A stretch of DNA of 64,000 nucleotides from Zygnema circumcarinatum SAG 698-1b (Eukaryota > Plantae > Zygnematophyceae). Location: positions 2,594,689-2,658,688 of the forward strand of contig CM074809.1 of the NCBI GenBank assembly GCA_037447605.1, given 5' to 3'. Position 1 is the stretch's first letter. The number at the start of each line of letters is the position of its first letter. The notes beneath the pieces are model-generated. The model searched no databases, was not told the origin of the DNA, and was given only the letters and a program-made list of their open reading frames with translations. Of this stretch, positions 1 through 50,640 are shown in pieces. The position numbers and the translations under genes were made by a program.

Positions 1-3000
1 CTAAGGCAATATTTATAGACTAAGGCACTGCTTGCAAGGGGTTCTAGCAATTTTGACTGTGCATACTCCTCTCCGTCAGTGCAAGATCTACATACGCTTC
101 ATAGTAACTATGCATCTCATGTGTCCCAAACAACCAGAAAAGTTCGTAGAGACAGTAACTTTCTGAAGGTGAAAACATGCCAGTTTTGCACAACCACCAA
201 TGGCTACATAGCGTCATACATGTCATTTGTATTTTCAACAACAACTCAACAGCAAAATCAGGAATTTCACCTCCATCAAATCGTTGAAATGGCCAGACTG
301 CCCAAGGAGCTTCTTGTAGACGATAGAAGGAAAGCGGAGGTCCAAAATGTGGCCGTTGTAGGTTGCAAGCGACAATATAGTTCCGATGAGTTCGTAGGAA
401 GTGATGAGGTCCGGGTCCACCATCCACGATTTGGCGCTGAACCAGCATTGGCGGGTCTCCTCGTCGTACGAAAACATGCCGTACTGCGAAGGGATGGAGG
501 CAAGCAGAGGGGCAGACTTCAGACACACGCTCTGGAAGGAAGGGAGAATGTGGGTCGGGAAAAGTCGTTAAACCAATTCAGATACTTCCTTCAATGTAAT
601 TCACATTTAAAGAAGACGAGCCAACAGACACCCAATGGATAGAGTGTGACAAGTCTCCCCGCAAGTATTTTGCAATGTTGTAACTTCTTCATATAAAAAA
701 GGTGAAATAGGAAAGGAAAAGGTGAAGTGCGTGAAGTGCGTAAGCGGACATATAGGCAGCCAGTCACTTTGTGTGATGTTTTCCAAGAAGCAGACCAACC
801 AGCTTGTGCCAACCAATAGAGCATCGGACAGAAGAGAACGTTCCTTAAGAAATAAGAGCATTGCAATTTCAGCCTAGGCCAATCTGCAATGTCATTGTAA
901 TCGAGCATTTCCGAGTTGAGGGATAATTATTCAAGCCACCACATGCGACCGAGGTTAAAGAATGACCATATTGGTGGTACACACATATGACAACGTTTTT
1001 GTTTGGACAGCCGAGGGGAGGAAGTGCGAGATGGCGGAAACCCTCTCGCGTCATTCCCGTATGTGGTAAAAGTGCACCTTTGGGTCGAAAATCTTTCTGA
1101 CAATGAGCTGGAAAAACTCCTTCTGCACGCCCCCTTCATCCACTCCATCTTCTCCTACGAACTGGACCTACACAACAGCTCTTGCGAACGAGAAAGATAA
1201 GTGGAAGACATTGGAATAAGTGCAAAAGCTTCTATCCACTATTGCTGCACCGACAACTCACTTAATAACGCCAATGTGCCCATTTATTCAGAAAGCAGCA
1301 AAATGAGTGTCTCAGCTCAGCACGGGTAGACAAAAATACAAAAAGCTAAAGCATTACGTGCGTGCTCACCACACTTGCAACTGCAAAGAGAGAGGAGCTT
1401 TATGCCTTAAAATGAAAGAAACACAGAGCGGCGTGTGTGAAGGCCAAACCAACTGCTAAGACCGCAAAGAACTGTTGTCAATTGAGCATTGTGGCAGGGA
1501 CGATGAAGGTGAACCGATATCGATCTGAAGATCTCCAAAACATAGTATCACTAAAACACATTTGATTACTAGTCAATCAACTAAAGATTCACGAAGATAT
1601 ACCAAGGAGAAGACTGAGATTCAAGATGCTATGTTGACAAACCTTGAGGGGCTTCAATAGGTCCTCTGGCCGTCTCTGTACCTACAATAGCAACAAATGA
1701 GATGCTATCAATGTCGGGATGCTATCAATATTTAACCTCAACATAATTCAGATCTAAAGAAATACACGCCAGTGTAAGCACTGCCAAAAGGTTGGCGCCT
1801 GACTGGTGAACAGTCCCATATTGAGGCAGCATGTGCGGTTTGCCATCAACAGGAGGCATAAGCTCGCCTTGAGGTTAGGGTAGAGGAAGAAAGCAGCTCA
1901 CTCCAGTTGGGCCACGAAAATATTTCAGCTTCAAAGGCGAAGACCATGTCCAGTCACTGCTCTATTTTACAGGTGTATTCATTCCTATGCACTTTCAAAG
2001 TCGTTAATTAACTTCTTTTGAATCTATTCCTTAACAATGTTACCTGAATAATTGCGTCAGCAATAATGTGTTCCCGTCGAACCCTTATAACATTGAAAGG
2101 AATTCCTCCTCCAAGGAAAAAGGAGCGCAACAATGCATCCTCGAACTGATGGCTCATTTGCGACCTCGAATCAAGGTGCAGTATCCGGCTCTTGCTTTCA
2201 GTATTGTACAAAAATGGATAATTACAAAAGGAGAAGTCGTATCTGCTTTTGTAAGAAAGCCACCTGAACGTGTGTTACACACTAAGCCAAACCATTCAGG
2301 CATCAGACCCACAGAACTACTCCGGGCAGACACGTGGAATTTGAAAACGCAATCACAACGGTCACGCTTGACAAATGCGTAACGTGAGAATAAGCAAGAC
2401 CAGTTGAGAGAAGCGACTTCGAATCCTGTCATGTAACAAGATTGTATCCAGTTCTAGGCATAGCCGGGAGACATTGGATTCCACGTATCCTCATCTTAAT
2501 CGATGGTGCATGACTCAACACCTCTAAAACAGCATCCATTAAGATGTAGAGAATAGTACTGCAACTGCGAGGAAAAGCCTCTCAGCGTGCAAATTTAAAA
2601 GAAGCTTGTTGACGGTTTACCTGTCTGCATGCTCCCAGTGAAAATAGTCTTCCTCAATGTTGAAATCTTCATTATTTACAGCGTCGTTGTAGAATGCAGA
2701 GAAACTCAGACGATGCTCTCGCTCATTAGATCTATCTGTCTTTTGGTCAAAGAACCAATAGCTTAATCTAAACCTTCGTTTCCAAGTGATAAGCAACGAA
2801 GTGCCTTAGACAAGCCTCTACGGCTCAGAGGCAAGAAAAGGCTGCTCCATGGTTACTTAAATCTCCATAATTTTGGCGCTACTTCCTCCACTGATTCGGG
2901 AAATACTAATTAAAACTAATTGAGACTAAGTCTCACCGCGGAATGATGAATCCCCAATGGCTTGTAGTCAAGACAGATGAAAAAAAAGGGCAAGATACTG

Positions 3001-7018: not shown

Positions 7019-7144
7019 TCCAACGGTCTGAATCTCACGAGGGTCCACGAGGCACATCCAACGGCTAACCTTCCCCATATACCGAACTCGGCTATCCAAC
7101 GGTCTGAATTCAACATTGTGTCCACGTGGCATAACCAACGGCTA
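7019..7144. promoter_or_regulatory. Cluster of four MSA-like (YCYAACGGYY) elements upstream of the HECT gene
   Basis: TCCAACGGTC at 7019, TCCAACGGCTA at 7057, TCCAACGGTC at 7095 and ACCAACGGCTA at 7134, lying 215-340 bp upstream of the ATG at 6804. Confidence 0.5.
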
Positions 7145-7170
7145 TATCTCGAATCGTTGCAACGGTGGAG

Positions 7171-9355
7171 GGAGGGAGACATGACAGCCCGGGCCGCGAG
7201 GCGAGGCCTTGAGGGACCCGGGCAGCCCAAACCTATTACAGGCTGCCTTTTACGCGAGGCAAGCGTCCGCGATTGGGCGAGCGTCGGCCGGGCAGCTCAA
7301 GTTTGGCAGCAAGCTGCCCTGACGACAAAGGGGTGGCGCAAATTAGCGGGCCGCGCGCCTACCTCATCTCCCCTGTGGATCAGACAGTACGGACGTACAG
7401 GTGGCGCCACCGCCGTGGGGGAATGCTGCTTTTACGGTGCGCGCGACGTGACGGGACGCGCCGTAGGGGGGCTCGCCCTGATCGGAATCGCGGCGACGGA
7501 GGACAAGAAAGAATTTCAGCTGCCCGGCCGCCGCTCGCCCAATCGCGGACGATTGATTTCGCTGGTGGAGCAGAATAAACCATATGAACGCTGCCCGGAG
7601 CCAAACTTCAGCTGCCCGGCCGACGCTCGCCCAATCGCGGACGTCCGCGAAGGGTAGCCAAAAACATTCCGGGCCAAGGGCTGGACGGACGACCATGGGT
7701 TGGATCAACCATTGGAATGGTAGCGACTTGCAAACCGTTGGTTCTGCACTGGCCAACCATTGGATCCAATGGTTGGGTGGGGCGGGAATCAATGGCCCAA
7801 TGGTTGCAGTCATTGGCAATGGTTAACTTGTAGCCAGCCAATAGTTGCAACCATTGGCAATGGTTGAATGGGGCGGGAATCAATGGTCGAATGGTTGCAA
7901 CCATTGGCAATGGTTGGCTGGGTAGCCAACCAATGGTCGAATGGTTGCAACCATTGGCAATGGTTGGGTGGAGCAGGAATCAATAGTCCAATGGTTGAAG
8001 CTACGTGCAATAGTTGGCTGGGAAGCTAGCCAATGGTTGCAGCCATTGGCAATGGTGGGATGGAGCGGGAAACAATTGTCCAATGGTTGAAGTTACTTGC
8101 AATGGTTGGCTGGGAAACTAGCCAATGGTTGCAGCCATTGGCAATGATTAGGTGGGCCGGGAATCAATGGTCCAATGGTTGCAGTTTTGGCAATGGTTGG
8201 CTGGATAGCCAGCCAATGGTTGCAACCATTGGCAATGATTGGGTGGGGCGGGAATCAATGGTCCAATGGTTGCAGTTACTTGCAATGGTTTGCCGGGAAG
8301 CCAGCCAATGGTTGCAACCGTTGAGAGGGGGGAAAAGGTAGAGAGCGAGAGAGCGAGAGAGCGAGAGAGCGAGAGAGCGAGAGAGCGAGAGAGAGCAGGT
8401 GGTCGGTGAGGGAGGGAGGGGAGACATGACAGCCCGGACCGCGGGGCGAGGCCTTGGGGAGGGCCCCCGGCAGCCCAAAACTATTACAGGCTGCCTACGT
8501 GAACCAAGCGTCCGCGATTGGTCGAGAGTCGCCCGGGCAGCTCAAGTTTAGCAGCGAGCTGCCCGGAAGAGAAAGTCGTGGCCCAAAATGGCGGGATGCG
8601 CGCCTACCTCATCGACCCTGTGGATAAGACTAGACGGACGAACAGGTGGCGCCACCGCCGTGGGGGAATGCTGCGGTACCGTGCGCGCGACGTGACGGGA
8701 CGCGCCGTAGGGGGGCTGCCCCTGATCGGAATCGCGGCGACGGAGGACCAGAAAGAATTTCAGCTGCCCGGCCGCCGCTCGCCCAATCGCGGACGATTGA
8801 TTTCGCTGGGTGGGCAGAATAAACCATTTGAATTCTGCCCTGAGCCAAACTTGACCTGCCCGGCCGACGCTCACCCAATTGCGGACGTTTGCTTGGAGGA
8901 CTGGGCAGCCGAAAACAGTTTAGGGCTGCCCCGGACCAAACCTTCTGCTGCCCGGACGACAGACGCCCAATCGCGGACGTTTGCTTCACTGTTGGGGCAG
9001 CCAAAACCATTTCCAATCTGCCCGTGGCCAGACCTGAGCTGCACCGGCCGACGCTTCGCGGACTCGCGGACGCTTGCCTCGCGTAAAGGGCAGCCTGTAA
9101 TAGTTTTGGGCTGCCCGGGGTCTTCACCAAGGCCTCGAACCGCCGCGAATGGCAGCCGAAAACATTCCGGGCCAAGTGCTCTACGGATCACGGGTTGGAT
9201 CAACCATTGGAATGGTGGCGATTTGTAAACCGTTGTTTCCGATATAGCCAACCATTGGATCCAATGGTTGGGTGGGGCGGGAATCAATAGTTCAATGGTT
9301 GCAGTCATTGGCAACGGTTAACTTGTAGCCAGCCAATGGTTGCAACCATTGAGAT
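7171..9355. repeat. Composite ~1.2-kb repeat module, two head-to-tail copies (A ~7171-8340, B ~8421-9355)
   Basis: Each copy starts GAGACATGACAGCCCGG. It then has one inverted 37-mer, a ~200-bp core, 2-4 direct 37-mers (TTCAGCTGCCCGGCCGACGCTCGCCCAATCGCGGACG) at a 91-92 bp period, a CCATTGG/CCAATGG array and a GA tract. The same module recurs at 13732-15090. Confidence 0.93.
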
Positions 9356-9868
9356 GGGGAAAAAGGGAGAGAGGGAGAGAGGGAAAGGGGGGAAGGGAGA
9401 GTGAGGGAGGGAGTGAGAGTGAGGGAGAGAGAGAGAGGGAGAAAGGGGGAAATGACATTGATAGAGGCATGTTTCCATTTTACAGAATTGGCTGAAAACA
9501 GAGGTAGGGGCTTGCTGGTTGCTTTTGAAACCCCTGCTTGGAACCTTCTCTGTGATAAGCAACAGTGTGGAAAAGCTGAGGCCAAGAAGATAAGAAGACG
9601 ATGTTCAACAGCTGCTGTACCGAGGGATGAGGAACTGCGATCCATGAGAGCTAGCACTATCCGCTGGTCTGCTGAAGAGTCCCTGTCAGTTGAAGCATAG
9701 TAATGCGCTTCAAGGTCAGCCATGGCCACCGCCGCCTGCTCTCCGAGCTGCTCCAGGCTCCTCCCTACATCCTCCGTGTGTTCCTCGAACTTAGAGCTGC
9801 GTTCTGCAATGGCGGCGTTCAAAGAGGAGAAATCGGCAAAAAGTGGAGTTGGGCTGTGGCTATTGCAG

Positions 9869-11643
9869 AGCTCCTGCTGGATCGCTCCATTCGGGACATC
9901 GAGCGGGAGAGGCAGCAGCTGCAGGCACAGGAGAAGAAACTGATCGCAGAAATAAAGAAGACTGCAAAGCAGGGGCAGATGGTGGGCTTTTCGCTTTCCT
10001 GTCGCTCCCTCGAGCCATTTGTTCAGCCGTGCGTGCATCATGACGAAGTGCAGGGTTCATCATCTTAATTTATATGCCTTCCTTCGTTTTTAGTTTTGAA
10101 TGAAGCGTATTGTTTGCATTCATTCATTGTCAAATGTCGATGCTGTGTACGCAAAATATGCATGTGAATATTTATTCTTTATCGAATGGATAGAGGTCGG
10201 TTTTGCCGCCTGCTTTCTGCAGAAGCGTTTCGCTTGCCTAGTTGGATAGTTGTTCTGCACTTAACATGACTAGTTTTGCCACTTTGTGTTTCAACTTACG
10301 TCGAAATTCTTATTTTTCTCCCACTGTTTGCTCAGAAAACTCGACTCTGTAAAGGCGTCTGTGTTTTCCGTACTAATGCTCTGGCAGGGAGACCGGCTTG
10401 CAGGGAGCTGTGAGGGCGAACAAGGCACCAAATAACAAAGTTTTATGGGCTGAAGTCTCAGCTGCAGGGCATTTCATTAAGAATACAGGTAAGAAGGCAG
10501 CTTTTTATCCAATACTCAACATCCATTTTAGGTGCATTTTGGTAAAGCAAAAGCTTGAGCCTCTCAGGCAAGCACTAGAAGTGGATCAGCTCTAACCTGA
10601 TGAGACGTTTTTGCATTTGAAGGGCGTGTTCTGCCAGCTGTTGAAAGTTTTGTGTTTGTGTACAGACTCTGAAGTCGACACAGGCCATGGCGGAAGCCAT
10701 GAGGGGAGTCACGAAGGCCATGGGCCAAATGAACAAGCAGCTCAACCTGCCCGCGCTCCAAAAGATAATGCAGGAGTTTGAGCGTCAGAATGAGAAGATG
10801 GAAATGACTTCGGAAATGATGGGGGATGCCATTGATGATGCCTTGGAAGGAGACGAGGAAGAGGAGGAAACGGAGGAGCTCGTGAATCAAGTTTTGGATG
10901 AAATTGGAATTGATTTGGATCAGCAGGTTCGTGCTCTCTTCTTTGGAATACGATATCTTGTCAATTGCTCAATATGTTATAAAAATTCAAGGGTTGGACG
11001 CTCGATCCTGATACCTGATCCATGTCATTGGTTGAAGTTGCTGCGAGTCCCCATGAATTCAGCTCATGCCGTTGTTAGTGCAAAAAGTTGGGTCAGTTAG
11101 GTCCATCAGCAGACTCGGATTGACTTCAAATTCACGTACTCTCTCCCAATGCAAAGACCATTCCTTCTATATAAAAGGCACATACACTTAATTATCGAAA
11201 GCACTCACCCACATGTATGGTCTAGTAAAGCAGAAGGTCATATTGCTGCTGTTCAGTAGATGCGGTAAGGCACATTCGTCTGTATATAGTCTAAGCGGGG
11301 GGGAGATGGGAAGGGAGGAAGAGAGAGAGAGGGATTCCTGGGATTCCACTTTTCCTTCTCCCCACCCTCCTTCCAGATGCATGCGGCCTGTCTCCCATGC
11401 TGCCAATAATCTCCATTAGCAAGCCCCTGAATCTCTTACTGACGGGAATTTAAACATTTTTCTGCCTTGCCCCTCCTTCCGCAGCTTGTCAACGCTCCTG
11501 CGGTTGCCGCCCAGCCCCAGGTGCAGGCCACAGCCGCCAAAGTTGCTCAGCCGGCGGGAGCAGGGGGAGGAGGCCCGCCCCCTGAAGGCGACGGCATAGA
11601 CAGCGACTTGCAAGCTCGGCTGGACAACTTGAGGCGGCTGTAA
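9869..11643 (+). pseudogene. VPS2: ESCRT-III subunit VPS2/CHMP2; 5' exon not found, two short internal deletions, one causing a frameshift
   Basis: Exons encode ELL-LDRSIRDIERERQQLQAQEKKLIAEIKKTAKQGQM; GAVR/(shift)RTRHQITKFYGLKSQLQGISLRIQ; TLKSTQAMAEAMRGVTKAMGQMNKQLNLPALQKIMQEFERQNEKM...DEIGIDLDQQ; and LVNAP...IDSDLQARLDNLRRL*. The conserved RENKRM and VMAKDLI segments are missing. Identity is certain; pseudogene versus assembly error is unresolved. Confidence 0.75.
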
Positions 11644-12124
11644 AGGCGCAATGTACATATGTATGGCTAGTGGTGTGATGCTTAACGGGGAGTGATATTT
11701 TTTACGCTCATGGAGCACCTGATTATAGTCCTCGAATGACTGGGTACTGAGTGGTGGGGCCAACATAAGTAGGCTGTGTGGGAGGAGTTCTATGTTCTAG
11801 TGCAAACATTTGTTTCAAGAGTTGTTGATTCTGTTTTCACGGTGGAGGGCGACCTTCCCTTCCCCACCCCCCTCCATCCCTCTCTCCCTCTCCCACCACC
11901 TGGACAATCACTCTCGATGCAATATTGTCAGAGAAGGTGATGACAAGGTTACAAAGACAAGTGCTGGCGATTCAGCCAACCAACTCCTAATCATTTCTAT
12001 CACCTCAGTGCAGTGATGATGCAAATAGACCAATGCGCTTGCCAACAGGCCATGTAGCTTGAAAAGCCCATGTTTCAAAAGATTCCGCATGGAGCTGTTG
12101 AGGTCCGTTGGTTCTCGACCGACC

Positions 12125-12290
12125 AACCATGCCAACGCTTTCAGTCATTGACAATGGCTGGCTTGGTAGCCAGCCAATGGTTGCGACCATTGGCAATGGT
12201 TGGGTGGGGCGGGAATCAATTGGTCCAATGGTTGCATTCATTGGCAACTTTTGGCTGTGTAGCCAGACCAATGGTTGCAACCGTTGGCAA
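12125..12290. repeat. Solo CCAATGG/CCATTGG palindromic array fragment
   Basis: CCAATGGTTGCGACCATTGGCAATGGTTGGGTGGGGCGGGAATCAA, the same motifs as the array portion of the composite module. Confidence 0.85.
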
Positions 12291-12624
12291 TCTACACGCA
12301 GGAGCAGCAGCAACATACCAACATAGTGCTGCAAAAAACAGGTACAGAGAGAGTCATACAATCAAAAAGACCTTTTTTTCATCAAAAAGGACAGCCTTTT
12401 AAGGCAACAAATTTACAACTGACAATTTCTGACACAGTTATTCTGCTATGTGGACTCAAGGACTGTGGACCGCTACAGAGCGTGACAATTGTCACGCTGT
12501 GCTTCAATATGAAACAAAAACCATGCATCATGCAGGATATGCTGCTGTAGGGGGCCACACTTCTTTCCAACCAAAAAAAAAATTGCCTTATTTCTTCCTA
12601 CTCTATTTTTACACCCTGTCTCAA

Positions 12625-13609
12625 TCAAGGACACAGAGGACACTTGAAGCCCTGGCCATCCTCAGATGGCAAAAACACTCCTCTGGGATCAGTCCACATC
12701 GGATGGAGAGGCTTCACTTGCAGCATTTTGTCTAAGCGGGCCAGTGACTGGCGCAGAAGAGCCGATTCACGCGCCAAGGCCGCATTGCTCGCCTCGATAT
12801 CCCAACCGCTGTTCAGCCTTTCATGGATGGTAACCAAATCTTGGAGGTCGCTTCCCAGCTTCCGTTTCCAAGAAGAGGAGCTCTGCAAATTTCTTCCCAC
12901 TCCCATTTTCCCTTCCCCGGGACCATTGCGGCGGCGGCTGTACTGCGGCTCACTGAATGCATTTTGGCTTGCACTAAAAACTGGCGAGGAGTCGCGGAAC
13001 AGAGGCCGCCTCGCACTGAATAGCGGCTCAGGCTCATCATAGAGCGGCGCCTTCAAGTTCGGGTAATCTGAGGACTTGGCATAATAATTCTTCGAGTCGC
13101 GCACAATGGGATATGTCTTCACAGTCTGGGGGAGCTGTATTGCAAACAAGATATCAGCAAACGCCAAATCAGTCAAGCGTATGCATACAAACCTTCAAAA
13201 CTAGCCCATACAAAAGCAAGCAGCACAAACGCAAAAAGCACTTTCCGATGCTAACCACCCTTAAAACAAAAAGCTTGAAATATTTGAAAGGTGCAGCAAG
13301 TCATACCCGACGAGGATTCGCTAACTCCTTTGCGAACTCCTCGTGCAACCAGTCCACCGCGAAAAGGTAGGCCTTTCCGAGTTCCGTGGCGCCCACAAGC
13401 AGCCACGCCCAAGCGCTGTATCCAAGCACCGCCATGGCAGCCAGCGCATGCCAGGAGACGGTGCACCACACGAGACAAAGGTCTTCCAGGTGCGGGCGAG
13501 CGGCTGCAGCAGCCTTCAGCCCGCCGCCCAACGCTGCTGCGAGCAGCTGCAACAGCTGCAGCCAGAAGGAGCAGAAAGCTGCCGCCTTGGCAGCACCTGG
13601 CACGGCCAT
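12625..13609 (-). CDS. Hypothetical protein (~270 aa), hydrophobic N-terminus and short coiled-coil C-terminus; 2 exons
   Basis: ATG at 13609 follows a CT-rich leader. Exon 13307-13609 ends at a GTATGA donor and exon 13134-12625 starts after a TACAG acceptor, both phase 0 (NPRR|LPQTVKTYP). No family recognised, and the 3' end is uncertain. Confidence 0.6.
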
Positions 13610-13731
13610 GGATGGGCAGGAGGAGAGAGAGAGCGAGAGAGAGAGAGAGAGAGAGAGAAGAGAGAGAGGGAGAGTGAGCGAGAGAGTGAGAGAGAGCGGG
13701 TGGTCGGTGAGGGAGGGAGGGAGGAAGGAAG

Positions 13732-15090
13732 ACATGACAGCCCGGGCCGTGGGGCGAGGCCTTGGGGAGGGACCCGGGCAGACCAAACCTATTACAGGCT
13801 GCCCCATACGCGAAGCAAGCGTCCGCGATTGGGCGAGCGTCGGCCGGGCAGCTCAAGTTTGGCAGCGAGCTGCCCGGACGACAAAGGGGTGGCCCAAAAT
13901 GGCCGGCCGCGCGCCTACCTCATCTCCCCTGTGGATCAGACTGTACGGACATACAGGTGGCGCCACCCCCGTGGGGGAATGCTGACGTACGGTGCGCGCG
14001 ACGTGACGGGACGCGCCGTAGGGGGGACTGCCCCTGATCGGAATCGCGGCGACGGAGGACCAGAAAGAATTTCAGCTGCCCGGCCACCGCTCGCCCAATC
14101 GCGGACGATTCATTCGCGGGGAAGGCAAAATAAACCGTTTGAATGCTGCCCGGCGCCAAACTTGAGCTGCCCGGCCGACGCTCGCCCAATCGCGGACGTT
14201 TGCTTCGAGGACGGGGCAGCAAAAAACAGTTTAGGGCTGCCCCACACTAAACCTTCAGCTGCCCGGACGACGCACGCCCAATCGCGGACGTTTGCTTCAC
14301 GGTTGGGGCAGCCAAAACCATTTCCGATCTGCCCGTGGCCAGACTTCAGCTGCCCGGCCGACGCTCGCCCAATCGCGGACGTCCGCGAAGGGTAGCCGAA
14401 AACATTCCGGGCCAAGGGCTGGACGGACGACCATGGGTTGGATCAACCATTGAAATGGTCGCGATTTGCAAACCGTTGGTTCCGGATCTAGCCAACCATT
14501 GGATCCAATGATTGGGTGGGGCGGGAATAAATGGTCCAATGGTTGCAGTCATTGGCAATGGTTGGTTGGATAGCCAGCCAATGGTTGAAACCATTGGCAA
14601 TGGTTGGCTGGGTAGCCAGCCATTGGTTGCAACCATTGGCAATGGTTGGATGAAGCAGGAATCAAGGGTCCAATGGTTGCTGTTATTAGCAATGGCTGGT
14701 TGGGTAGCCAGCCAATGGTTGCAGCCATTGGCAACGATTGGGTGGGGCGGGAATCAGTGGTCCAATGGTTGCAGTTATTGGCAATGTGTTGCTAGGAAGC
14801 CAGCCAATGGTTGCAACCATTGAGAGGGGGGAAAAGGGAGAGAGAGCGAGAGAGAGGTGGTCGGTGAGGGAGGGAGGGAGACATGACAGCCCGGGCCGCG
14901 GGGCGAGGCCTTGAGGAGGGACCCGGGCAGCCCAAACCTATTACAGGCTGCCCCATACGCGAAGCAAGCGTCCGCGAATGGGCGAGCGTCGGCCGGGCAG
15001 CTCAAGTTTGGCAGCGAGCTGCCCGGACGACAAAGGGGTGGCCCAAAATTGTGGGCCGCGCGCCTACGTCATCTGCCCTGTGGACCAGAC
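13732..15090. repeat. Composite repeat module: one full copy (C ~13732-14825) and a truncated copy (D ~14878-15090)
   Basis: Inverted 37-mer at 13820-13856; direct 37-mers at 14071, 14162, 14254 and 14345; CCATTGG array at 14440-14825. The module then restarts with GAGACATGACAGCCCGGG and breaks off at ~15090. Confidence 0.93.
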
Positions 15091-15694
15091 TGAAAATAAA
15101 AAACAAAAACAAAATAAAAAGGTTTTTTCTATCTTCGTCCGAGCCGCTTGATGACGTCAAAACAATGGCGTCATCGGATTTGCCGGTTTTCTCCCAAAAA
15201 CCAGTCGTCGTGACGCCCTCTCAAGTTCTCGAACTTGCAATGCGAGAAGCGAAAACCGTGACGTGACAGAAAGCAGAGCTTCGAACGTCTGCCTTCGCCA
15301 TAATAAATAAAAAAAGAAAAGGAAATATGTATTTGAGAGTGGAGCCGCGCTGCAGATGGGACCGTTGCTTTCAGCAGTCCCTCCTCCTCCGGCTCTATGT
15401 CTTCGGCATCATGGGCAACTTTCCTACTCGCCTTCAAGATAACACTGTCAACTTCCTTCATTGGGCTTCACTGCTACTCGACACAAGGTAGAAGAGTCAG
15501 TTGAAAGACACAGGTCTGACCTCTTTGACTCAACCTCCGACGGGTTTTGCTACAACCCCAACCTCTCAAGGACTCATTGGACCGCACCGTATGCAGGACC
15601 TGCGCGCAATACATTTGTAGGAAACTCGCGCCAAAATTCGTGATGTTGTACAGGCAGCTCTCAGCGCTCTCTCAGGCTACTCTACGCATGACTT

Positions 15695-18594
15695 CTACCG
15701 CTGCTGCTCTAAGCCCCCTCCTCCTCCCCTTCTACTGCTGTCTCTGGCAATGTCACCACTCAAGCTCGTGCTTTCGGAAGAGCTGGGAAGATCATCCGTT
15801 TGCTTTGCCACTGCCTCCGTGCTCTCCCTCTCCCTTCTCTCCTCATACTGAAGCTTCTGCAGGTCTTCATACCCATAGCTCACCCATGTGCCTTCTGCCT
15901 GCGGCTTCTCTCCCCCTCTATCATCAGCACTGCCGGCCTTCGCTGCTGAGGGCTCAAAACTCTTCTCTAATAGCTCAGATGCCTCGGCAGGTTCGTTTGG
16001 CCCTTGTTTCGGTGGGTCTTTGCTCTCATCCGCAACCATCTCCAGTCTGTTCGACCGGATTCCTTCGCCTCCAATTTCTTTCTCTTCCACTTCTTCTCTC
16101 TTCTCTTCCTGTCCGTAACATACCACCGTAGATTCTCCCTCCAGCGTACTGGGTTCCGAAGGAAGCTCAGCTGAAGGTTCCTGCTCTACATTTTCTACAA
16201 TTCCTTGCAGCGAATCTTCCCTATACCTAAGCATAACAGACTCAGCAAGGTTGCTTGAATCAGCGACATCCACTTCACTTGTAGTGGCATTTACTTTCCC
16301 ACTCCAAGTGCTGCCTTCCGTACCCCTCCCACTACTTCCTTCGCCCCTGTCCACCTCTTCATCCCACCACTCCTCGGTTGCTACTTGCCACATATGCTCC
16401 TCTTCCTCATCCTCCAAAACTTCAGTCGTTTCTCTGAAACTCGATGTGGCATCTTCAAATTCCTCCTCTTCTCTACCTAAGGGTGGCGTTTGGATGACTA
16501 CATTCTCAGTTTCTGATGTAGTTGTGTCTTTATGACTGCCAGATTCACACGACTCTTCCTCTTTATCAGATTCCCTCCTTTCGCCTTCCGAAACCTCGTC
16601 CACTGCTTCAGAGGCTTCACTCTCCGTTACTGTCTTGCTAGCCACAGAAAGCCCTGCATTATCCTCCACAGCAGTCTGCACCTGTGCATCATTCATGTTT
16701 TCCGTTTCCTCTGCATTCCTAGAGGGTTCAGGCGCATCTCCATAAAGAGCCATTAGGGACTCCCCGCAGTCTTCTACGACTGTGAGCTCCCCATTCATAG
16801 AAGCTGCAATTACTTCCTGTGTTGCCTCTTGGAATCTTTCCTCCCCTTCAATCTCGTGATCAGCACATTCGTCGCCAATCTTCGTTTTTCCCATCACTCC
16901 AATTTTTTTGCCCTCTTCATCCTCAGGGTTCTGCTGTGCATCAGATACACTAGGCGTTCCCTTCACGAAGGAATTCTCTTCAACGGACCGCACGCTCTCT
17001 TCGAAACGAGGCTCAGTCTCTTGGCAAGATTGTATGGATATGCCCACACTCAACTTCATGTCGCCTATACTTATTTCCTCAGATTGTTGCAAAGCAGCTC
17101 CACTTCCTTGCGAAAGCTCATTACCAGCAACCAGGGGCCCGGACTTGAGACTATCATTCACTATCAATTTCTCCCTTTCCACCTCTCCCTCTCTCAGCAC
17201 CTCCCCACCCGTTTCCACGTCGTTTGCTACCACCACTGTCTCCTCTTCTCTCGGTTCCCCCGTTTTCACTGTTCCCTCCTCCATTCCTTCTATCAAAGCT
17301 TCTCTGTTATCTTTGATATTCTCCTCTCGAACCATGTCCACTCCAGCTATCTCCTGGATTTCCATCTTGATCGATTCACCATCAGACACAAGACTGTCCA
17401 ACTCCTTGACTACCCCACTGTCTGCTATTCCATTTGATAACCTATTCTCACTACTTTCTCCTTCTCTATCTTCTTTATCAATTCCCCCTTCGTTAGACTC
17501 CATAGTTGGTTCCCCCCCCTGGTTTCCCATGCTTTCCTCCCCTTCCAAATGCCGTGACTCTCCCTCTGCGCCCTCCGCTCCCCTCACACCACTACTTGAC
17601 CTCTCCACTATTTTTTCCGTATTCCCTCCCTGCTCATCAACCGTCGCTATCCCCACAAGTCCTTGCAGCGCTCTGTCCAAGACATCCACCCCCACGTCAT
17701 CCTCCACTTGACCTCCTTCCCTTGGCTGCAAGTTGGGCTTCTCTCCCGCTCTCCTAACATGCCACGTGTCCCAAACGGCCTGCCCCTGCGGCCCCTCCAA
17801 GCGCTGTGGCGGCACCCCCAACAGCTGTGCGTCAAGCAGGCGAGGGTGGAGGGCCTCTGCCTGCGGGCGGTAGAGTTGGAAGTCGAAGCTGCAAGGCTGG
17901 GCCAGATCGCCCATCTCGTCGAGGAAGGTTTGGATGGTGTGCTGGGCGACGGACGGCTGCGATCTGCCGCTGCGATATCCAAGGGCTGCGAGTGCTGCTG
18001 CCAGATAGCGCCCAGTGCAGTCAAGATAGTATCCCTCCAGGAGGTCGGCCCACACGCCCTGCGGACTGACTTGCAGAGTTGCCCAGAGGAAAGTGCGGAG
18101 GTTCGAATGGGCGACTGCCACTCGGCGGAGATTTTGGCGTCGAGGAGCGAGCTGGAGTGAGCCCACCTGCCATACGAGGGAAAAACTAAAAACCTAGCAT
18201 TAGCTGATTCATACGTGCGACCCACTTCTTTCGCTCTCTCTTTCTCTCTCCCCCTCACCCCTCGCCCCTCTCCCATCTCCCCTCTCCCCTCCCCTCTCCC
18301 CTCCCCCCCTCCCATCTCCCTCTCCCTCCCTCCCCTCCCCCCTCTCCCTCCCTCCCCTGCCCCCTCTCCCCTCGTCCCTCTCACCCCTCTCGACTCTCTC
18401 CTCTCCCCTCTCCCCTCTCCCCCCCCCTCCCGCCTCCCCATTCTCCCTCCCGCTTCCCTCCCTCCTCTCCCCGTCTTCCCCTCTTCCATTCGTCCCCTCT
18501 CCCCCTCCTCCCTCCTCCCTCCATCTCCTCCCCGTACCCCCTCACCCTCCCTTCCCACTTCCCTTCTCCCATTCTCCCCTTCTCCCCTCCCACG

Positions 18595-18633
<39 letters not shown>

Positions 18634-25110: not shown

Positions 25111-25266
25111 AAGGGCTGCGTTGTTGAGCCTAGTAGTAGCTTTCCGCTCCTAGCTTTTTTCGATTGTCCTTAGGTCCTTCGCGACCAGTCCCTCGTGGTT
25201 CCCCATGCTGCTTTTGTCCATGTACATTTAATGGCCTCGCCATCCTGAGATCAATGCCACATCTTT
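25111..25266 (+). repeat. ~160-bp dispersed repeat, copy 1
   Basis: GGGCTGCG..GAGCCTAG..TTTCCGCTCCTAGC..GGTCCTT..GACCAGTCCCTCGTGGTTCC..CATGTACATTT.ATGGCCTCGCCATC..GAGATCAATGCCACATC. Homologous copies at 50441-50580, 51164-51325 and 63830-63880. Confidence 0.85.
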
Positions 25267-25784
25267 AAGGAGGGGGGGCACATCTTTCCGCCGAAATGGG
25301 CCGGAGAGTGTTTTGGGTATAGCTCCGTATGTATCAAACGCGTGTATTAATACACTGTATAATACATGCTTATTATACAACGTTTAAAAATACAGTGTAT
25401 TTTTAATGTATTTAACGTATTTTTTTTATTTTCGTGCTTAGTTGAACAAAGATTGATTATAATATTGAAATTCCAGCACTTGCCAAGTCACGTCACTTGC
25501 CAAACATTCAACTCGTGTGACTTGGTCCGTACATGTTGGTACACCCCTTCCGTACATAATTTCCGTGCGTACAGTATCGTTGTCGTGTCGTTGTCGTATG
25601 TTGTCTTCCTTTTCTGCCGTCGATGAGTCCCCAGTACACGTGTCATAATCTAGGGCCGTCGATCGAGTGCGCGCGAGCACATATATATGTGTACGTGTGC
25701 GCGAGCGTGTCGTTGAACAGGCAAAACAAACCGGTGGGCCGTAACTGCGCACATGGAAAAGAAGGCGCTTTTCAAGCGAGGGAG

Positions 25785-25960
25785 GAGGGAGGAGGGAGGA
25801 GGGAGGAGGGAGGAGGGAGGAGGGAGGAGGGAGGAGAGGACGGAGGGAGGGAGGGAGGAGGGAGGAGGGAGGGAGGGAGGGAGGGAGGAGGGAGGGAGGG
25901 AGAGGGAGGAGGGAGGAGAGAGGAGGGAGGAAGGAGGAGGGAGGGGGAGGGGGGAGATTG
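25785..25960 (+). repeat. GGA/GGGA purine tract directly upstream of the VAMP71 start codon
   Basis: About 170 bp of only G/A ending a few bases before ATG 25969. Confidence 0.9.
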
Positions 25961-25968
25961 GAGGCGCC

Positions 25969-28543
25969 ATGGCGATTCTGTACGGTCTCGTGGCGAGGGG
26001 CGTCGTGGTGTTGGCGGAGTACAGGTGCGCCGCAGCTTGGAGGGGGAAGGGTAGGACCGCGCGTTTGTAGGAAATGTCGCGGCTGCGTACTGCTGCTTCT
26101 TGACTTCCAGATTGATGTCGGAGGCGTGACCCGAAAGCTTGACAGTTTCTGGCCAGGTTTTAGTCTTGTGTTTCGTTTTTTTCTCAGTGTGCAACAGCCT
26201 TCTTATCAGTCGCTGCAGAACATGTCGCTCAGCTAAACTCTCAGAGTAACAGAGGCATTTATGAAATTTTGGTGGCCTCTCCTGAGTGTATCCTTCTCAC
26301 GTACTCTTGTTAAACTCGGTTACAATGTAGAATTCATCCTACCTACAACCTCTTGTAATGAACTTTTCTCGCATTTTGGAATGTCCTGGAGTTTGGCCTT
26401 TCCGTCTCCTTCGCTGTTTCCAACCAGTTCACAATCAAGAAATGCTCCCGGTCACTTGCAAATATCATCATCGTCATCTGTTAGTTTGATTTCAGTGTCG
26501 TCGCGGGAAACGCCAGCACCATTGCGCGACGGATATTGGAGAAGCTTGGATCATCCGAAGACAACAGAGTTTCGTACACACAGGACCGCCATGTGTTCCA
26601 CATTCTGCGGACAGAGGGTCTTACATTCCTCTGCATGGCAGATGCCCCTTTTGGACGTAAGTCTTGTTTCCCTTACTGGAGCAGCTCAAATGGAATAAGA
26701 CTAATGCAAGGCTGTAAGGCGATGTTGTTCTAATCTTTTGAAGAGATTCCACGATAAAGACTGCATACTCGTGGTTGCGAGAAGCTGGGGAATTGCGTGC
26801 CTATCTTTTTATAGTCACAAAAGGATCCCAAGGTTTGTTGAAGTGAAATTCTACATTCTGCTCTTTCTTTACTAAGCATATTATCACATTTAAGGTGTTA
26901 TGATTGAAATGGTAAGTTTTGTGTTGCTTGTGGGAAAAGACGTCAACTTCTATGACTACGTATATTGGATTAAAAAATAACTCACACTTATTGATGTAGC
27001 ATCTACACTGAAGGAATCCATAGCATTCACTTGTTCGACTTCATCCATTGTAGAGAAAAATGATTGAATGAATCTTTTCTAAGAGTTCTAACTCCATTTC
27101 CATTTTCGGAAGGATAGTGATCCATCTACATACTTTTCAATCATACAATCTTGACTGCCAGCATCTTATTGTGTGCAGGACGGGTCCCATTTGTCTTTCT
27201 CGATGACATCCAACTGCGATTCTTAAAGACTTATGGCAGAGTGGTCCAAACAGCATTGGCCTATTCCATGAATGATGAGTTTTCACGAGTGCTAGCTCAG
27301 CAGATGGAGTACTTCTCCAGTAATCCAAACTCAGATTCAATCAATCGTGTACGTGGAGAGATCAGTGAGGTACGTTCTTTCTGGCGTTGTAACAAAGGAG
27401 CTGATAGTTGGAATTATGGGGAGTTTGATGATGGGATGGTCTCCGAAGAGTGAGGGAGACTGGGAGATGGAGATGAAAAAGACATTGAAGATTCAAATTT
27501 GGGACTGGAGATACTATGGTTTGATGGTGAGCTGGCTTAATGTGGTTATTCGTTTCAACTCTAATTGTGTTGTGGTCGAAATGTGCATAGCGAGCGGCCA
27601 AAGAGAGACGATTCTGTGTCTCCTGTCATATAGTTCTTGTTAAAGGCCTTACTAGTCAGCATTTTGAACAGAATGGAACCATAGGTTGCTGCCATGGTAG
27701 TGCAAAGCTGCCCTTTTGTAACAGTTGCTTGTTGATGTGCTTGAGTTTTCATGAATCATAAGGATATGCCTATCGTGCTGAGGCATGCTTTGCAGCTAGG
27801 TATAGAATCCAGGAGGTCATGCAGCATGCGATCAAATTTGGGCAACGATTGCTCAAAAGCACTTTGCGTTGGCATGGTTGGTTCTGTCATTTGTGAACTG
27901 TAACAAAACCTTTATGTGCTCTTTTTGTTTTTACACTTAGATTGGCGGGGCATTTTTGCCCTCTTTCCAGATTTTTTCGTGATGGGTGCCCTTGGCCTGT
28001 GCCCAGGTGAGAGCGATCATGGTGGAGAATATCGACAAGGTGTTGGATCGTGGAGAGCGCATTGAGTTGCTGGTAGATAAAACCAGTGGGCTGAGCGATA
28101 ATACTTTCCGGTTCAAGAAGCAAGCAAGGGGGCTTAAGCGTGCCTTATGGTGGAAAAATGCAAAGCTTATGTACGTATCCTTGGTGCCCTGGACGAGAGA
28201 ATGCTTCTGTGCTTCCTATCCGTGGGCGTGCATCTGCTCGGTTTTTCCCTTCTACTGTATGGGAGTTGTGTTCTTTTTCTGTCGGATAAGTTACTTTTCG
28301 ATTCAAGCTGGATTATTGGATTGGAAGGATGTCTGTGAATGAGCTGAGAGTGGCTGTTTCGGGAAGGTGAAATTCTTCCTCTTGCCTTCCTGCAGTAGTT
28401 TTCTTTGATTTGGGAATCGTGGGCTTATAAGTCCTCATCCTTCTCACCTGTGCAGGGTTTCGCTGAGCCTGATCATTCTCGTTGTTCTCTACCTCTTAGT
28501 TTCTGCTGCGTGTGGTGGCCTTACTCTACAATCATGTCGTTAA
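25969..28543 (+). CDS. VAMP71: Longin R-SNARE, VAMP7/VAMP71 family; 5 exons
   Basis: MAILYGLVARGVVVLAEYS|VVAGNASTIARRILEKL...FLCMADAPFG|RVPFVFLDDIQLRF...SINRVRGEISE|VRAIMVENIDKVLDRGERIELLVDKT...LWWKNAKLM|VSLSLIILVVLYLLVSAACGGLTLQSCR*. Longin domain, R-SNARE motif and C-terminal TM; all introns GT-AG and in phase. Confidence 0.96.
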
Positions 28544-33487: not shown

Positions 33488-33839
33488 GCGGGTCCATGGC
33501 GAGCCGGCTCACGCGTGCCACCAACCTCCCCTTCTCTCTCCCTCCTCCCCTCCCTCCCTCGCACGTGCGAACGCTCGCGCTCGTCAACAACGGCCGCTTC
33601 TTCTGTTGCCAACGGGCGCGTATCGCGTGACGTGACGGAGATACGGGACGATGTGTCACGCCACGTTCCACTGCCCCTTTCGTCTACACGTGCGGGAGGG
33701 CGCACGGATTGGGCGGCGGCGAGAAGCGGCTGGCGCGGGCAGGGGGGAAAGTTTTCCCTTCGTTTTTTTTGGAACACTGAGTGGTGTCGTTATCCGGCGC
33801 CATTAACTGCGCGAGGCGGACCGTTGGATCGACCCTTGG

Positions 33840-34255
33840 AATAGTTGCGGACCATTGATTCCGAACCAACCAACCATTGACAACAGTTGGCAACCCATTG
33901 GCTAGTGAACCAGGCAACCAGTGCAGTGGATTGCAACTGTTGGATCCAATGGCTGCCAACCATTGCCACTGTTGCAACCCATTGATTATTTTGTTCTGGG
34001 TTGTTCAGGTAAGCATCTTTGTTTATTTTCGATGTGATAGTTAAAACCATTCCCTCCCCTTTTTCCCCATCATCGCTCCCATTGAATCCGAGACGTGAGT
34101 TTTAGTAATCCTCCACTCTGCAACCAGTGCGTTGACCTCGGTACAATGGTTGCAACTATTGCAATGGTTGCCAACCATTGGACACACCATTGGTTACGCC
34201 TACCATTCCAATGGTTTGCAACCATTGGCATCGGACCGAATCAACCATAGCCAAC
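33840..34255. repeat. Two degenerate CCAATGG/CCATTGG arrays upstream of the LysM gene
   Basis: Arrays at 33840-33985 and 34140-34255 contain caatggttgcaac, ccattgg and ccaatgg motifs. Confidence 0.75.
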
Positions 34256-40545: not shown

Positions 40546-42309
40546 CAGTCAGCAGTCCTCATATTTTCCACCCTGTACAGTGCGTCCCCAAGAAATTCGC
40601 CCCGATTTTGCCGAAACCAGCTTTTTGTACGGTAACTCTGTGTTAGCCGTACTACCCGTACTATCCGTACCCCTAAAACCCTAGAACCCTAAAACCCTAA
40701 AAACCGTACTAGCCGTACTAGCCGTACTAGCTGTACTAGCCGTTACGGGCTTCAGCAAAACTCACCGAATCTTCCCGCACGTGCCGCCGTAAGAGGCGCT
40801 CGCTCGTCTTTCCTCCTTCTTGGCTCCGATACGACACGACACGATACGATACTGAACGAAACGGTACGATATGGTACGGTACGATACGTACGGTCCAATA
40901 TGAACTCTAACATGAACTCTAACAATACCGCGCGTCTATTGGTAACACGAACCTTCTATTTGCAAAAATCAATATTTTCGCCTCATATTTGCCAAAGGAA
41001 AATTCTATTCTCACACCTTTTTTGCCTACACACAGACCTTTTTTCGCCGGGCAGGTTCTATTTTAGAAAATCGAAAAATGCTTTTTTAACACCTTTTTTG
41101 TCTATACACACTCCTTTTTCCGTCGGGCAGATTTTACTCCTGATTTTTTTTTGGAGTGAAAAACAATATCGGCTTGCCCGAATCCACTGAAGCGGAAGAT
41201 CCGTCCGCCACGAGAATCGTTCGCGGGTGTGCGTCCCTTCACAAGCATTGAATCCCGTCGACTAACTCGCAGATCGCAACACGGCAGATCACCGTTCGAT
41301 CTGCAGTCGGGCTCTGTCCCAGCGAATGGCACGTGCCCACGTGCCCCACCAATGCCGGCTGGCACGTGCTAGAGCGCGCGTCCCACGGCCCGAGATCTCC
41401 ACAAAATATGAGCTTGACTGGCCAGCCTGCGGCGGCTCTCCAACTAACAGCCAACACCATCTCCCAAGTGTACCCTTAATCACGTGGCAAATTATAATTG
41501 GTCCAAGCATTCAATGTACGGTATTTCGCCTTTCCTCGAAACTGTGACCGTACAGTTTTTGTATGGACGGTTTGAGCCGGATTTGGCGGGACACGTGGGC
41601 CCGTGCCATTCGCTGGGAACGAGACCAACTGCAGATCGAACGATGATCTGGCGTGGTGCGATCTGCGAGTTAGTTGACGGCGGAGATTCACCGCACGTGT
41701 GAAGAACGCACACCCGTGAACGATCATGGGGCGAACGGATCTTCCGCTCCTAGCGGATTTGGGCAAGCCGATTTTTTCCTCTCCAAAAACAAAATCAGGG
41801 GTAAAATCTGCCCGACGGAAAAAGGTTTGTATCGATTCCAGAAAGGAATGAAAAAAGCATTTTTCGTTGTTAATCCTTTTTTTTCTAAAATAGAACCTGC
41901 CCGACGAAAAAAGGTCTGTGTGTAGACAAAAAAGGTGTGAGAGTAGAATTTTCCTTTGCCAAAACCATGGCGAAAATATGAGGACTGTTGACTGTACGGG
42001 AACTCACCTAATCTCCCCGCACGTGCCGCCGTAAGAGGCGCTCGCTCTTCTCCCCTTTCTTTTTGGCTTCGATACGATACGATACGATACACCGAGCGGA
42101 AAACTACGTCTATACGTTACGATATGGCACGATACGATACGATGCTAGCGATGTGGTACGGTATGGTACGGTATGATACGTACGGTCGAACATGAACTCT
42201 AACATAATGCCGCGCGTCTATTGGTAACACGAACCTTCTATTTGCAAAAATCAAGATTTTCGCCTCAGATTTGCCAAAACCATGGCGAAAATATGAGGAC
42301 TGTTGACTG
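40546..42309. mobile_element. Non-autonomous Tc1/mariner-like foldback element with one left end and two right ends
   Basis: Left: TA|CAGTCAGCAGTCCTCATATTTT (TA at 40544-45). Right: AAAATATGAGGACTGTTGACTG|TA, ending at 41994 and again at 42309. It has an internal ~370-bp inverted repeat (~40975-41345 vs ~41590-41985) and a ~220-270 bp direct repeat (~40770-40990 vs ~42010-42280). No transposase ORF. Confidence 0.75.
40671..40742. repeat. Interstitial telomere-like (CCCTAAAA)n seed followed by (CCGTACTAG)x4
   Basis: ccctaaaa-ccctagaa-ccctaaaa-ccctaaaaa, then ccgtactag repeats. Confidence 0.7.
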
Positions 42310-45854: not shown

Positions 45855-46160
45855 TTCAGTAATCAACCATTGGCAATGGGTGGCTTGGTAGGATACCAAT
45901 TGTTCTACCAATGCGCAATGGCTGGTTGGTTCGACCCACCAATGGTTTCAACTTTCAATTAGATCCAATGGTTGAACCCATCACACAGAAAGCACAAAAT
46001 TTACCCTTCGAGTGGCAGATTTTAACTCACAACATTGCGAGGAGGCAGCGCAGCTTCCCCATCACACCGCTAAATACCAAAATTACTAAACAAAAAGAAG
46101 GGTTGACTAGCTTCTTAACCACTTGTCGACCATTGCCAATGCCTCGCAATCATTGGTTGG
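45855..46160. repeat. Degenerate CCATTGG/CCAATGG array between divergent genes
   Basis: aaccattggcaatggg, ccaatggtttc, atccaatggttg, ccattgccaat and tcattggttggatcc. Confidence 0.7.
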
Positions 46161-50440: not shown

Positions 50441-50580
50441 CTGCGTTGTTGTGCCTAGACGTAGTTTTCCGCTCCTAGCTTCGTTTTATTGTGTTTCGGT
50501 CCTTTGCGACCAGTCCCTCGTGGTTCCACATTTTGCTTTTGTCCATGTACATTTGATGGCCTCGCCATCGCGAGTTCAAT
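50441..50580 (+). repeat. ~160-bp dispersed repeat, copy 2
   Basis: ctgcgttgttgtgcctag..ttttccgctcctagc..gaccagtccctcgtggttcc..catgtacatttgatggcctcgccatcgcgagttcaat. Confidence 0.85.
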
Positions 50581-50640
50581 GAAAGTTTCCAGGGTATTGT
50601 TTAACAGTTTTTATAACAAAAACTTACAGCAAATGCCATC

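Follow-up and report, generated by a model that had tools for sequence, protein, structure and literature searches.

A composite non-coding repeat with promoter-like sequence content, arranged in tandem at two nearby loci of Zygnema circumcarinatum

In a stretch of 64,000 nucleotides of the Zygnema circumcarinatum SAG 698-1b genome (contig CM074809.1; hereafter the window), we found a non-coding unit of ~1.2 kb that is repeated head-to-tail and in one orientation at two nearby sites, with three copies complete and a fourth one cut. It is best explained as a lineage-specific, non-coding higher-order repeat of three blocks, each of which repeats by itself. We see about an even chance that it represents promoter-type DNA that was amplified and scattered locally through duplication and unequal exchange.

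Results

Anatomy of the repeat

Same-strand, head-to-tail copies were seen at both loci by a repeat finder, TRF, blastn and MAFFT, as a preliminary description of this DNA had proposed. The fixed block order that it reported was kept in the copies as well, in full in A, B and C (D is cut inside the core). Copies A to D were all delimited with these four tools. The parts of the two loci, in window positions, are as follows.

7153-8397, plus strand: copy A, with inverted unit (7164-7310), core (7312-7510), 1.5 direct 91-bp units (7515-7669), leader (7656-7797), CCAAT array (7797-8330) and a (AGAGAGCG)7 tract (8340-8393)
8398-9429, plus strand: copy B, with inverted unit (8410-8555), core (8557-8754), 91-bp units (8759-9146), leader (9154-9293), a single CCAAT unit (9293-9358) and a GA tract (from 9351)
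9430-9458, plus strand: stub of a third unit, ~30 nt, after copy B (compared by eye)
13612-13699, plus strand: left-edge GA tract of locus 2, preceding copy C
13700-14848, plus strand: copy C, with inverted unit (13717-13866), core (13868-14066), 3.5 direct 91-bp units (14071-14406), leader (14394-14536), CCAAT array (14536-14829) and GA tract (14822-14860)
14849-15092, plus strand: copy D, truncated within the core

The constant order runs from a GA tract through one inverted 91-bp unit, a unique core of ~200 bp and direct 91-bp units to a 145-bp leader, a 92-bp (50+42) palindromic CCAAT array and a GA tract. The GA tracts are microsatellites of 40-110 nt. The motif CCAATGGTT occurs 41 times against 0.84 expected. 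Sub-unit numbers vary: there are 1.5 direct 91-bp units in A, ~4.5 in B and 3.5 in C, and ~6, 1 and 3 CCAAT units of 92 bp, respectively. The runs amount to ~2.0 units at locus 1 and ~1.3 units at locus 2. The stub after copy B matches the unit start, by eye, at ~19/23 nt as far as ATGACA, where homology stops; copy D is followed by an A-rich stretch and then by the 3' side of a NYN-LOTUS gene.

The inverted and direct 91-bp units form arms of 98-130 nt that are 84-89% complementary. In copy B, the last 91-bp unit is the reverse complement of the first, which closes the foldback with arms of ~130 nt; both arms are present in this copy only, A and C being devoid of the closing one. The inverted repeats are internal to the unit, and the foldback does not include the CCAAT array or the GA tract. 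We considered the possibility that each unit is a hairpin-RNA or small-RNA locus, in which a putative CCAAT/GA promoter would transcribe the inverted and direct 91-bp units. This would agree with the length and complementarity of the arms and with the fold of copy B (z = -11.7 versus shuffles). Yet, equally good folding is expected of any long inverted repeat, no Rfam family reached threshold and the closing arm is missing in two of the three full copies, so that we regard this explanation as highly improbable.

Divergence, coding test and composition

The copies diverge by 6-13%, in addition to gains and losses of whole sub-units, and pairwise identity by segment ranges from 80 to 97%. Identity is highest between C and D (97.5% in the inverted unit, the first ~150 nt), and A is no closer to B than to C. 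The 91-bp units show positional orthology (A1 = B1 = C1, B2 = C2, B3 = C3), which, together with the gains and losses of whole units, makes up the pattern expected from unequal exchange. Tandem repeats are prone to mis-assembly, and the copies might in principle be an artefact of this kind. However, artefactual duplicates are expected to be near-identical, and the observed divergence and differences in whole sub-units therefore make this extremely unlikely.

The open reading frame that follows the GA tract encodes 158, 41, 83 and 127 amino acids in the four copies, and its variable columns are spread 13/14/13 over the three codon positions. A coding reading of this frame was rejected on these unconstrained lengths and counts, and the earlier statement that the module has no coding capacity is thus borne out.

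The core has a GC content of 65% and a CpG observed/expected ratio of 1.1, i.e. it is a CpG island without CpG decay. The 71 substitutions counted comprise 29 transitions and 42 transversions; CpG transitions make up just 9/71, a pattern unlike that of a methylated, silenced transposon. The CpG ratio of the CCAAT array is 0.3, and the block-2 relics listed below mix CCAATGG with CCAACGG. On these grounds, we considered that CCAATGG may have been derived from CCAACGG through CpG decay.

Neighbouring genes and gene remnants

The following features surround the two loci.

235-528, minus strand: HECT domain
7019-7152: two-copy array of a 77-bp unit with CCAACGG (MYB/MSA-like) and CCACG(TGG) motifs, read directly
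9688-9843, minus strand: MED22 remnant, C-terminal half with no 5' part (Pfam Med22, E = 0.077)
9874-11643, plus strand: VPS2/CHMP2 pseudogene (tblastn against P0004 and P0007)
13304-13609, minus strand: first open segment of an orphan open reading frame

The assignment of the MED22 remnant agrees with its top three PDB sequence matches, all of which are MED22 (E = 0.003-0.01, chain residues 79-130). The VPS2 pseudogene lacks the conserved first ~20 residues, and its exon 3 (from 10404) carries 1 nt in place of the 21 expected, which causes a frameshift; a protein search with its exon gave best matches of 82-89% identity (entries from Logan and JGI; 85% for Mesotaenium), so that the alga's own copy was not among them. 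What lies to the right of copy B is thus the 3' half of MED22 joined head-on to a 5'-truncated, frameshifted VPS2, without a promoter. This weakens the preliminary claim that the module abuts the 5' ends of genes. As to its placement just upstream of the HECT gene, the HECT domain is on the minus strand, and a separate array, the 77-bp one, stands outside the module in the interval that leads from the HECT side to copy A.

At locus 2, the adjacency described for the GA tract was found. The orphan frame has its ATG (13607-13609, minus strand) at a distance of 3 nt from the GA tract and remains open upstream as far as an ATG at 13807, inside copy C. The orphan frame has no Pfam family, and a HMMER search with its exon over 1.84 billion representative proteins returned no relatives, the single match being a low-complexity PxFS-repeat. 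Since neither a family nor relatives in either protein search were found, the orphan frame may not be a gene. The 8-kb stretch from HECT to NYN-LOTUS appears to be without a supported live gene. The annotation is corrected in that the VPS2 and MED22 neighbours are dead remnants and the module is a repeat to be masked, not a set of genes.

Dispersal of the leader/CCAAT block

The leader and the CCAAT array (block 2 below) were also found apart from the rest of the unit, in the following places.

12074-12291, plus strand: solo leader (~76% identity with those of A, B and C) with 1.7 CCAAT units
33823-33977 and 34140-34254: two old leader/CCAAT relics (nhmmer E = 1e-10 and about 1e-5)
45855-46168: old, weak CCAAT-array relics
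50890-50965: weak CCAAT/CAACGG motif cluster
57175-57280: weak CCAAT/CAACGG motif cluster

The solo piece contains no core, 91-bp unit or GA tract; the VPS2 remnant and the orphan frame converge on it, so that it is flanked by the 3' end of each. Taken together, the solo piece and the old relics occur in both orientations within 64 kb. The core, the inverted unit and the 91-bp units have no further occurrence in the window. These findings are best explained if block 2 alone is part of an older and more widely dispersed family. Outside the module, CCAAYGG is modestly enriched (31 versus 17 expected).

Search for hallmarks of a mobile element

We then considered the possibility, raised by the preliminary description, that the module is a mobile or amplifying element. 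It could be a non-autonomous element, either a TRIM/LARD-like LTR element or DNA that a tyrosine recombinase or rolling-circle enzyme moves as a circle, with integration in multimeric form. In the TRIM/LARD version, the GA tract would be the polypurine tract, the next ~255 bp the LTR and TGGCGCC... the primer-binding site. A GA tract precedes every unit and resembles a polypurine tract, though it is far longer than one; TGGTCGG, after the GA tract, is a possible unit start; and TGGCGCCACC lies ~255 nt into the unit, at the place of a candidate primer-binding site, the only tRNA in the window being a tRNA-Glu. The two loci have no flanking sequence in common, similarity between copies is highest for C and D (first 150 nt), the left edge of locus 1 falls within ~5 nt of the position just past the GA tract, and block 2 has left its solo piece and several old relics in both orientations; these last observations would suit a mobile element.

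Yet, none of the expected ends were seen. Target-site duplications were absent at the three boundary pairs, as had been reported beforehand: the k-mer comparison revealed no shared k-mer of at least 5 nt at the boundaries of either locus, the sole shared 5-mer, at locus 1, being off-position. For LTR-type TG..CA ends, no matching ..CA end was present and the unit had no terminal inverted repeat, the inverted repeats being internal, with both arms in copy B only. On its right side, copy D breaks off 11-14 nt before the end of the supposed LTR. The same lack of terminal inverted repeats and target-site duplications applies to MITE or foldback ends, and no hAT-like CACAG..CTGTG pair with an 8-bp target-site duplication was found in the window. 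Helitron features (5' TC, 3' CTRR, sub-terminal hairpin, A/T insertion) were absent at 7153, 9458, 13612 and 15092 on both strands. As to a SINE/LINE-type origin, there was no target-site duplication and no tRNA-like or Rfam match, and copy D is cut on its 3' side before the A-rich stretch.

Rfam gave nothing above threshold in the window, just sub-threshold hairpin look-alikes, and ARAGORN returned the unrelated tRNA-Glu. Searches of public data gave no lead either: blastn against a phage collection and a word search among gene calls on public contigs with the module frame 7118-7657 had no match, exact patterns of 29 nt (core) and 27 nt (CCAAT array) were blank on metagenome contigs, and a 10-mer motif retrieved only unrelated primers from the full text of the literature.

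The ends of the runs are out of phase. Locus 1 extends from ~+5 of a unit to ~+35 two units on, whereas locus 2 begins where a GA tract begins and ends at +245, one unit on. Run ends that do not coincide, the age of the copies (6-13% diverged) and the absence of the core from the rest of the window all argue against a mobile element, as does the lack of shared termini, terminal inverted repeats, LTR or Helitron ends. We consequently judge this explanation, including its TRIM/LARD version, to be rather unlikely; no feature identifies the module as a mobile element. As in satellites and macrosatellites, units are arranged head-to-tail, start and stop at an arbitrary phase and change in the number of units and sub-units; the arrays are very short.

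A single array split by an inserted 4-kb block was also envisaged. It was discarded because no homology was present to the left of 13612 (score 13 versus a shuffle mean of 14.3) and because, in unit coordinates, one edge does not continue the other.

Promoter-like content

On the plus strand, each unit presents a CCAAT-rich 92-bp minisatellite, a purine tract and an ATG. VAMP7, a real and conserved gene of the window, has a purine tract of ~185 nt that ends 11 nt before its ATG, and a purine leader before an ATG is thus native to gene starts here. The promoter-like content claimed for the module is recognizable at the level of motifs and of the CpG-island signature.

A GA-type core promoter has been described in Arabidopsis (PMC3190954). 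The module is similar in that its GA tract is at the expected transcription start or 5' UTR, as is also the case for VAMP7. It differs in that the Arabidopsis elements are short, whereas the tracts of the module are microsatellites of 40-110 nt. In primates, ERV9/LTR12 solo LTRs carry tandem repeats in U3, with 5-17 copies of ~41-bp units that contain NF-Y-bound CCAAT boxes (PMC11853044). The module would share with them a repeat-borne array of CCAAT sub-repeats, variable in copy number, just upstream of transcription start. Unlike the module, which has no LTR ends or target-site duplications, ERV9/LTR12 is a retroviral LTR with a U3-R-U5 structure and defined ends; furthermore, the units of the module are 92 bp long and palindromic, and NF-Y binding to them is putative.

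We also considered whether the module is a working promoter cassette adopted by genes, from which the minus-strand orphan would obtain its CCAAT boxes, transcription start and GA/CT leader, and which possibly acts bidirectionally towards HECT. Consistent with this, the CT-rich complement of the GA tract comes within 3 nt of the ATG of the orphan, the core bears the signature of a CpG island, a native gene (VAMP7) also has a purine leader, and repeat-borne CCAAT arrays are known as promoters in primate LTR12 (PMC11853044). Yet, the orphan has neither family nor relatives and may be no gene, copy B is followed on the plus strand by a gene remnant that is dead and has no promoter, HECT has a motif array of its own (7019-7152) and the solo piece lies between two 3' ends. 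We find it clearly unlikely that genes have adopted the module in this way.

Discussion

We propose that the unit is, or derives from, promoter DNA. It would consist of a CpG-island foldback (block 1: inverted 91-bp unit, unique core and direct 91-bp units), a leader with a 92-bp palindromic CAATGGTTG/CCAAT minisatellite (block 2) and a GA microsatellite (block 3), and would thus be laid out like a Pol II gene start of this genome, with CCAAT-box array, purine leader and ATG. Its spread over a few tens of kb would have occurred via copying at the DNA level, by unequal exchange within arrays and by segmental or ectopic duplication, rather than by transposition with defined ends.

Several observations support this proposal: the differing run ends, the unit gains and losses, the divergence pattern, the unrelated flanks, the CpG content of the core, the VAMP7 leader and the MED22/VPS2 remnant. 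Others point away from it. The unrelated flanks of the two loci would also fit insertion, the GA tract is similar to a polypurine tract, C and D are the closest pair, as the LTRs of one element would be, and CCAAYGG is just modestly enriched outside the module.

The human macrosatellites DXZ4 and D4Z4 have kb-sized units with a CpG-island promoter, tens of which are found at one locus. The module resembles them by its kb-sized, non-coding or barely coding head-to-tail units, each with a CpG island and promoter-like content, but its two loci comprise ~2.0 and ~1.3 units, every one a mosaic of minisatellites. In foldback (FB-type) transposons and MITEs, the inverted repeats are built of tandem sub-repeats. 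The long inverted repeats of the 91-bp unit likewise flank a unique core in the module; however, they are not at the ends of the unit, A and C have no closing arm, there is no target-site duplication, and the CCAAT array and GA tract are outside the foldback.

A self-contained cassette that unites promoter and hairpin may also be envisaged. Its CCAAT/GA promoter would produce a structured 91-bp foldback RNA, leading to small RNAs or a chromatin boundary; it would multiply without transposase-type ends, for instance by excision of circles and their re-integration in multimeric form, and would give rise to new gene starts, e.g. that of the orphan frame. We deem this very unlikely.

On present evidence, the module is an ordinary type of local repeat. 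Should it indeed be promoter DNA, this locus would illustrate how regulatory DNA is assembled and copied in an alga closely related to land plants: minisatellites of transcription-factor sites would have been joined to a purine leader and a CpG island before duplication of the resulting unit. Copy C is placed directly before an open reading frame without relatives, possibly a gene of very recent origin. The module would then have a bearing on the origin of promoters and of new genes.

Copies and block structure of the composite unit

Four copies of a composite non-coding unit, all on the same strand, were concordantly indicated by the repeat finder, TRF, a MAFFT alignment and a blastn search of the window with copy C as query. 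The composite module in same-orientation tandem copies at two loci, as put forward in the preliminary description, was thereby borne out, with copies A and B forming locus 1 and copies C and D, the latter partial, forming locus 2.

Copies of the unit
7153-8397, + strand: copy A
8398-9429, + strand: copy B, followed by a stub of about 30 nt of a third unit, ending at 9458
13700-14848, + strand: copy C, with a GA tract in front (13612-13699)
14849-15092, + strand: copy D, cut inside the core

Measured as start-to-start spacing, the unit is 1245 nt long in A and 1149 nt in C. The order of its blocks is constant in all copies, beginning with a GA tract and ending at the next one. Against an expectation of 0.84, CCAATGGTT was counted 41 times in the window.

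Blocks of the unit
1: GA tract
2: single inverted 91-bp unit
3: unique core, about 200 bp long
4: 91-bp units in direct orientation (A, 1.5; B, about 4.5; C, 3.5)
5: leader of 145 bp
6: minisatellite of 92 bp (50+42) with CCAATGGTTG/CAACCATTGG as its palindrome (A, about 6 units; B, 1; C, 3)
7: next GA tract

Divergence between the copies varies among segments, within a range of 6-13%, and whole sub-units have also been gained or lost between them. Numbered by position within each copy, the 91-bp units are positionally orthologous (A1 = B1 = C1, B2 = C2 and B3 = C3), and the last one of B corresponds to the module's first unit in reverse complement. We considered the possibility that the tandem copies were an assembly artefact. 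This is unlikely, since duplicates resulting from mis-assembly would be near-identical and not separated by such divergence and by entire sub-units. Similarity between A and B does not exceed that between A and C, and the closest pair is C and D, suggesting that tandem copying and dispersal were similar in age, and that locus 2 later underwent a further event or gene conversion.

An ATG is found directly 3' of the GA tract in each unit, opening an ORF of 158, 41, 83 and 127 aa in A, B, C and D, respectively, and the variable alignment columns are distributed 13/14/13 over the three codon positions. Both observations agree with the lack of coding capacity noted earlier. A word search with the longest of the module's ORFs yielded no relatives, Rfam returned no family at threshold for the module, no tRNA-like sequence was present in it, and two metagenome scans gave no match to its sequence.

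Profile searches within the window confined the core, the inverted unit and the 91-bp units to copies A-D. The leader with its CCAAT block is the only module block that also stands alone elsewhere in the window.

Leader and CCAAT block outside the module
12074-12291: solo copy (identity to the leaders of the module, about 76%)
33823-33977: older relic (E = 1e-10)
34140-34254, 45855-46168, 50890-50965 and 57175-57280: weaker relics

The older relics contain a mixture of CAACGG, CAACTG and CAATGG motifs, of which the last might be a CpG-decayed form of the MYB-type CAACGG site. Another dispersed repeat of about 150 bp is present in three copies with 81-87% identity (25112-25266, 50441-50581 and 51165-51323), two of which flank a tRNA-Glu(CTC) at 50641-50714.

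Genes and gene remnants next to the module

The module was also said to abut gene 5' ends. This holds for the minus-strand orphan ORF left of copy C, the start of which is 3 nt from the GA tract, but not for the right side of B, where dead remnants and no gene start are found; the adjacency to genes is mostly illusory. The orphan ORF belongs to no Pfam family and has no relatives by word search, and when all 1.84 billion representatives were searched with HMMER, its sole match was a low-complexity repeat. It may be very young, or no gene at all.

To the right of B, only the C-terminal (3') half of MED22 is present on the minus strand (9843-9688; Pfam E = 0.077, the top three PDB sequence matches being MED22 with E = 0.003-0.01). 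About 30 nt beyond it, a plus-strand VPS2/CHMP2 sequence begins at about residue 20, without the conserved N-terminus, and its exon 3 (start 10404) has 1 base where 21 are expected, a 20-nt deletion that shifts the frame. The segment 9688-11643 is a double pseudogene lacking a promoter, in which the dead remnants of MED22 and VPS2/CHMP2 are fused head-on.

On the other side, the HECT domain is encoded at 235-528 on the minus strand, and a separate array of two 77-bp repeats (7019-7152) lies between HECT and copy A. This array contains four CCAACGG (MYB/MSA-like) sites and CCACG/CCACGTGG boxes. Copy D adjoins the NYN-LOTUS gene on the 3' side of that gene. The module occupies an 8-kb interval bounded by two real genes, and no supported live gene was found there. 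Within the NYN-LOTUS region, a 368-nt pyrimidine tract of the + strand (18258-18625), purine-rich on the gene's minus strand, sits at the junction of two long minus-strand ORFs and resembles the tract at 25775-25964.

Search for hallmarks of mobility

The flanks of the two loci have nothing in common, which indicates that the arrival of the unit at one of them was independent of the neighbouring sequence. Its reading as a mobile promoter cassette was nevertheless not established, every testable hallmark of mobility being missing. Target-site duplications were absent from all three boundary pairs, as had been reported before, neither TG..CA nor Helitron ends were found at the module boundaries, and the window contained no transposon with CACAG ends and an 8-bp target-site duplication carrying the palindrome arrays. 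The inverted repeats lie inside the unit and not at its ends, and both arms are present in copy B only, which folds as a foldback (z = -11.7). A possible alternative is an LTR-type element, in which the GA tract would be the polypurine tract, a segment of about 255 nt the LTR, and C and D the LTR pair; yet this reading fails on the ends and on target-site duplications.

In unit coordinates, locus 1 opens at about +5 and closes two units further on at about +35, and locus 2 opens with the start of a GA tract and closes one unit further on at +245. These differing ends look like those of excerpts from a tandem array, not of insertions of a fixed-end element. Structurally, the module comes closest to macrosatellites in which every unit contains one CpG island, and to foldback elements whose arms consist of sub-repeats. 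Elsewhere in the window, 40759-42278 (CpG o/e 1.2) contains two repeat pairs, one direct and one inverted (40972-41360 vs 41979-41575, 82%), and probably represents a further foldback or transposon-like element with no relation to the module.

Promoter-like content of the unit

On the + strand, each unit presents a CCAAT-box array, then a purine leader, then an ATG. A conserved gene of the window, encoding a VAMP7-type longin R-SNARE, has a purine tract of the form (GGGAGGA)n, about 185 nt long, that ends 11 nt before its ATG (25774-25985), suggesting that the layout of the unit corresponds to a native gene-start design in this genome, where long purine leaders right before start codons seem to be normal. 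The exons of this gene run on to about 28200. A GA-type core promoter is known in Arabidopsis (PMC3190954), and in functional terms the unit is closest to the CCAAT/NF-Y repeat array that primate LTR12 elements have in their U3 region (PMC11853044).

The part made up of the core and the 91-bp units has a GC content of 65% and a CpG o/e of 1.1, and CpG transitions account for only 9 of the 71 substitutions between copies. It thus has the signature of an unmethylated island, unlike a silenced transposon. The CCAAT arrays (7691-8325 and 14431-14822) have a CpG o/e of 0.3, against 1.1 in the adjoining core.

Our preferred explanation, to which we would give about an even chance, is that the unit is promoter-type DNA, which may be active as such. 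Unequal exchange would have amplified it, and segmental or ectopic duplication would have produced the local copies. The repeat is real and carefully structured, yet ordinary in kind.
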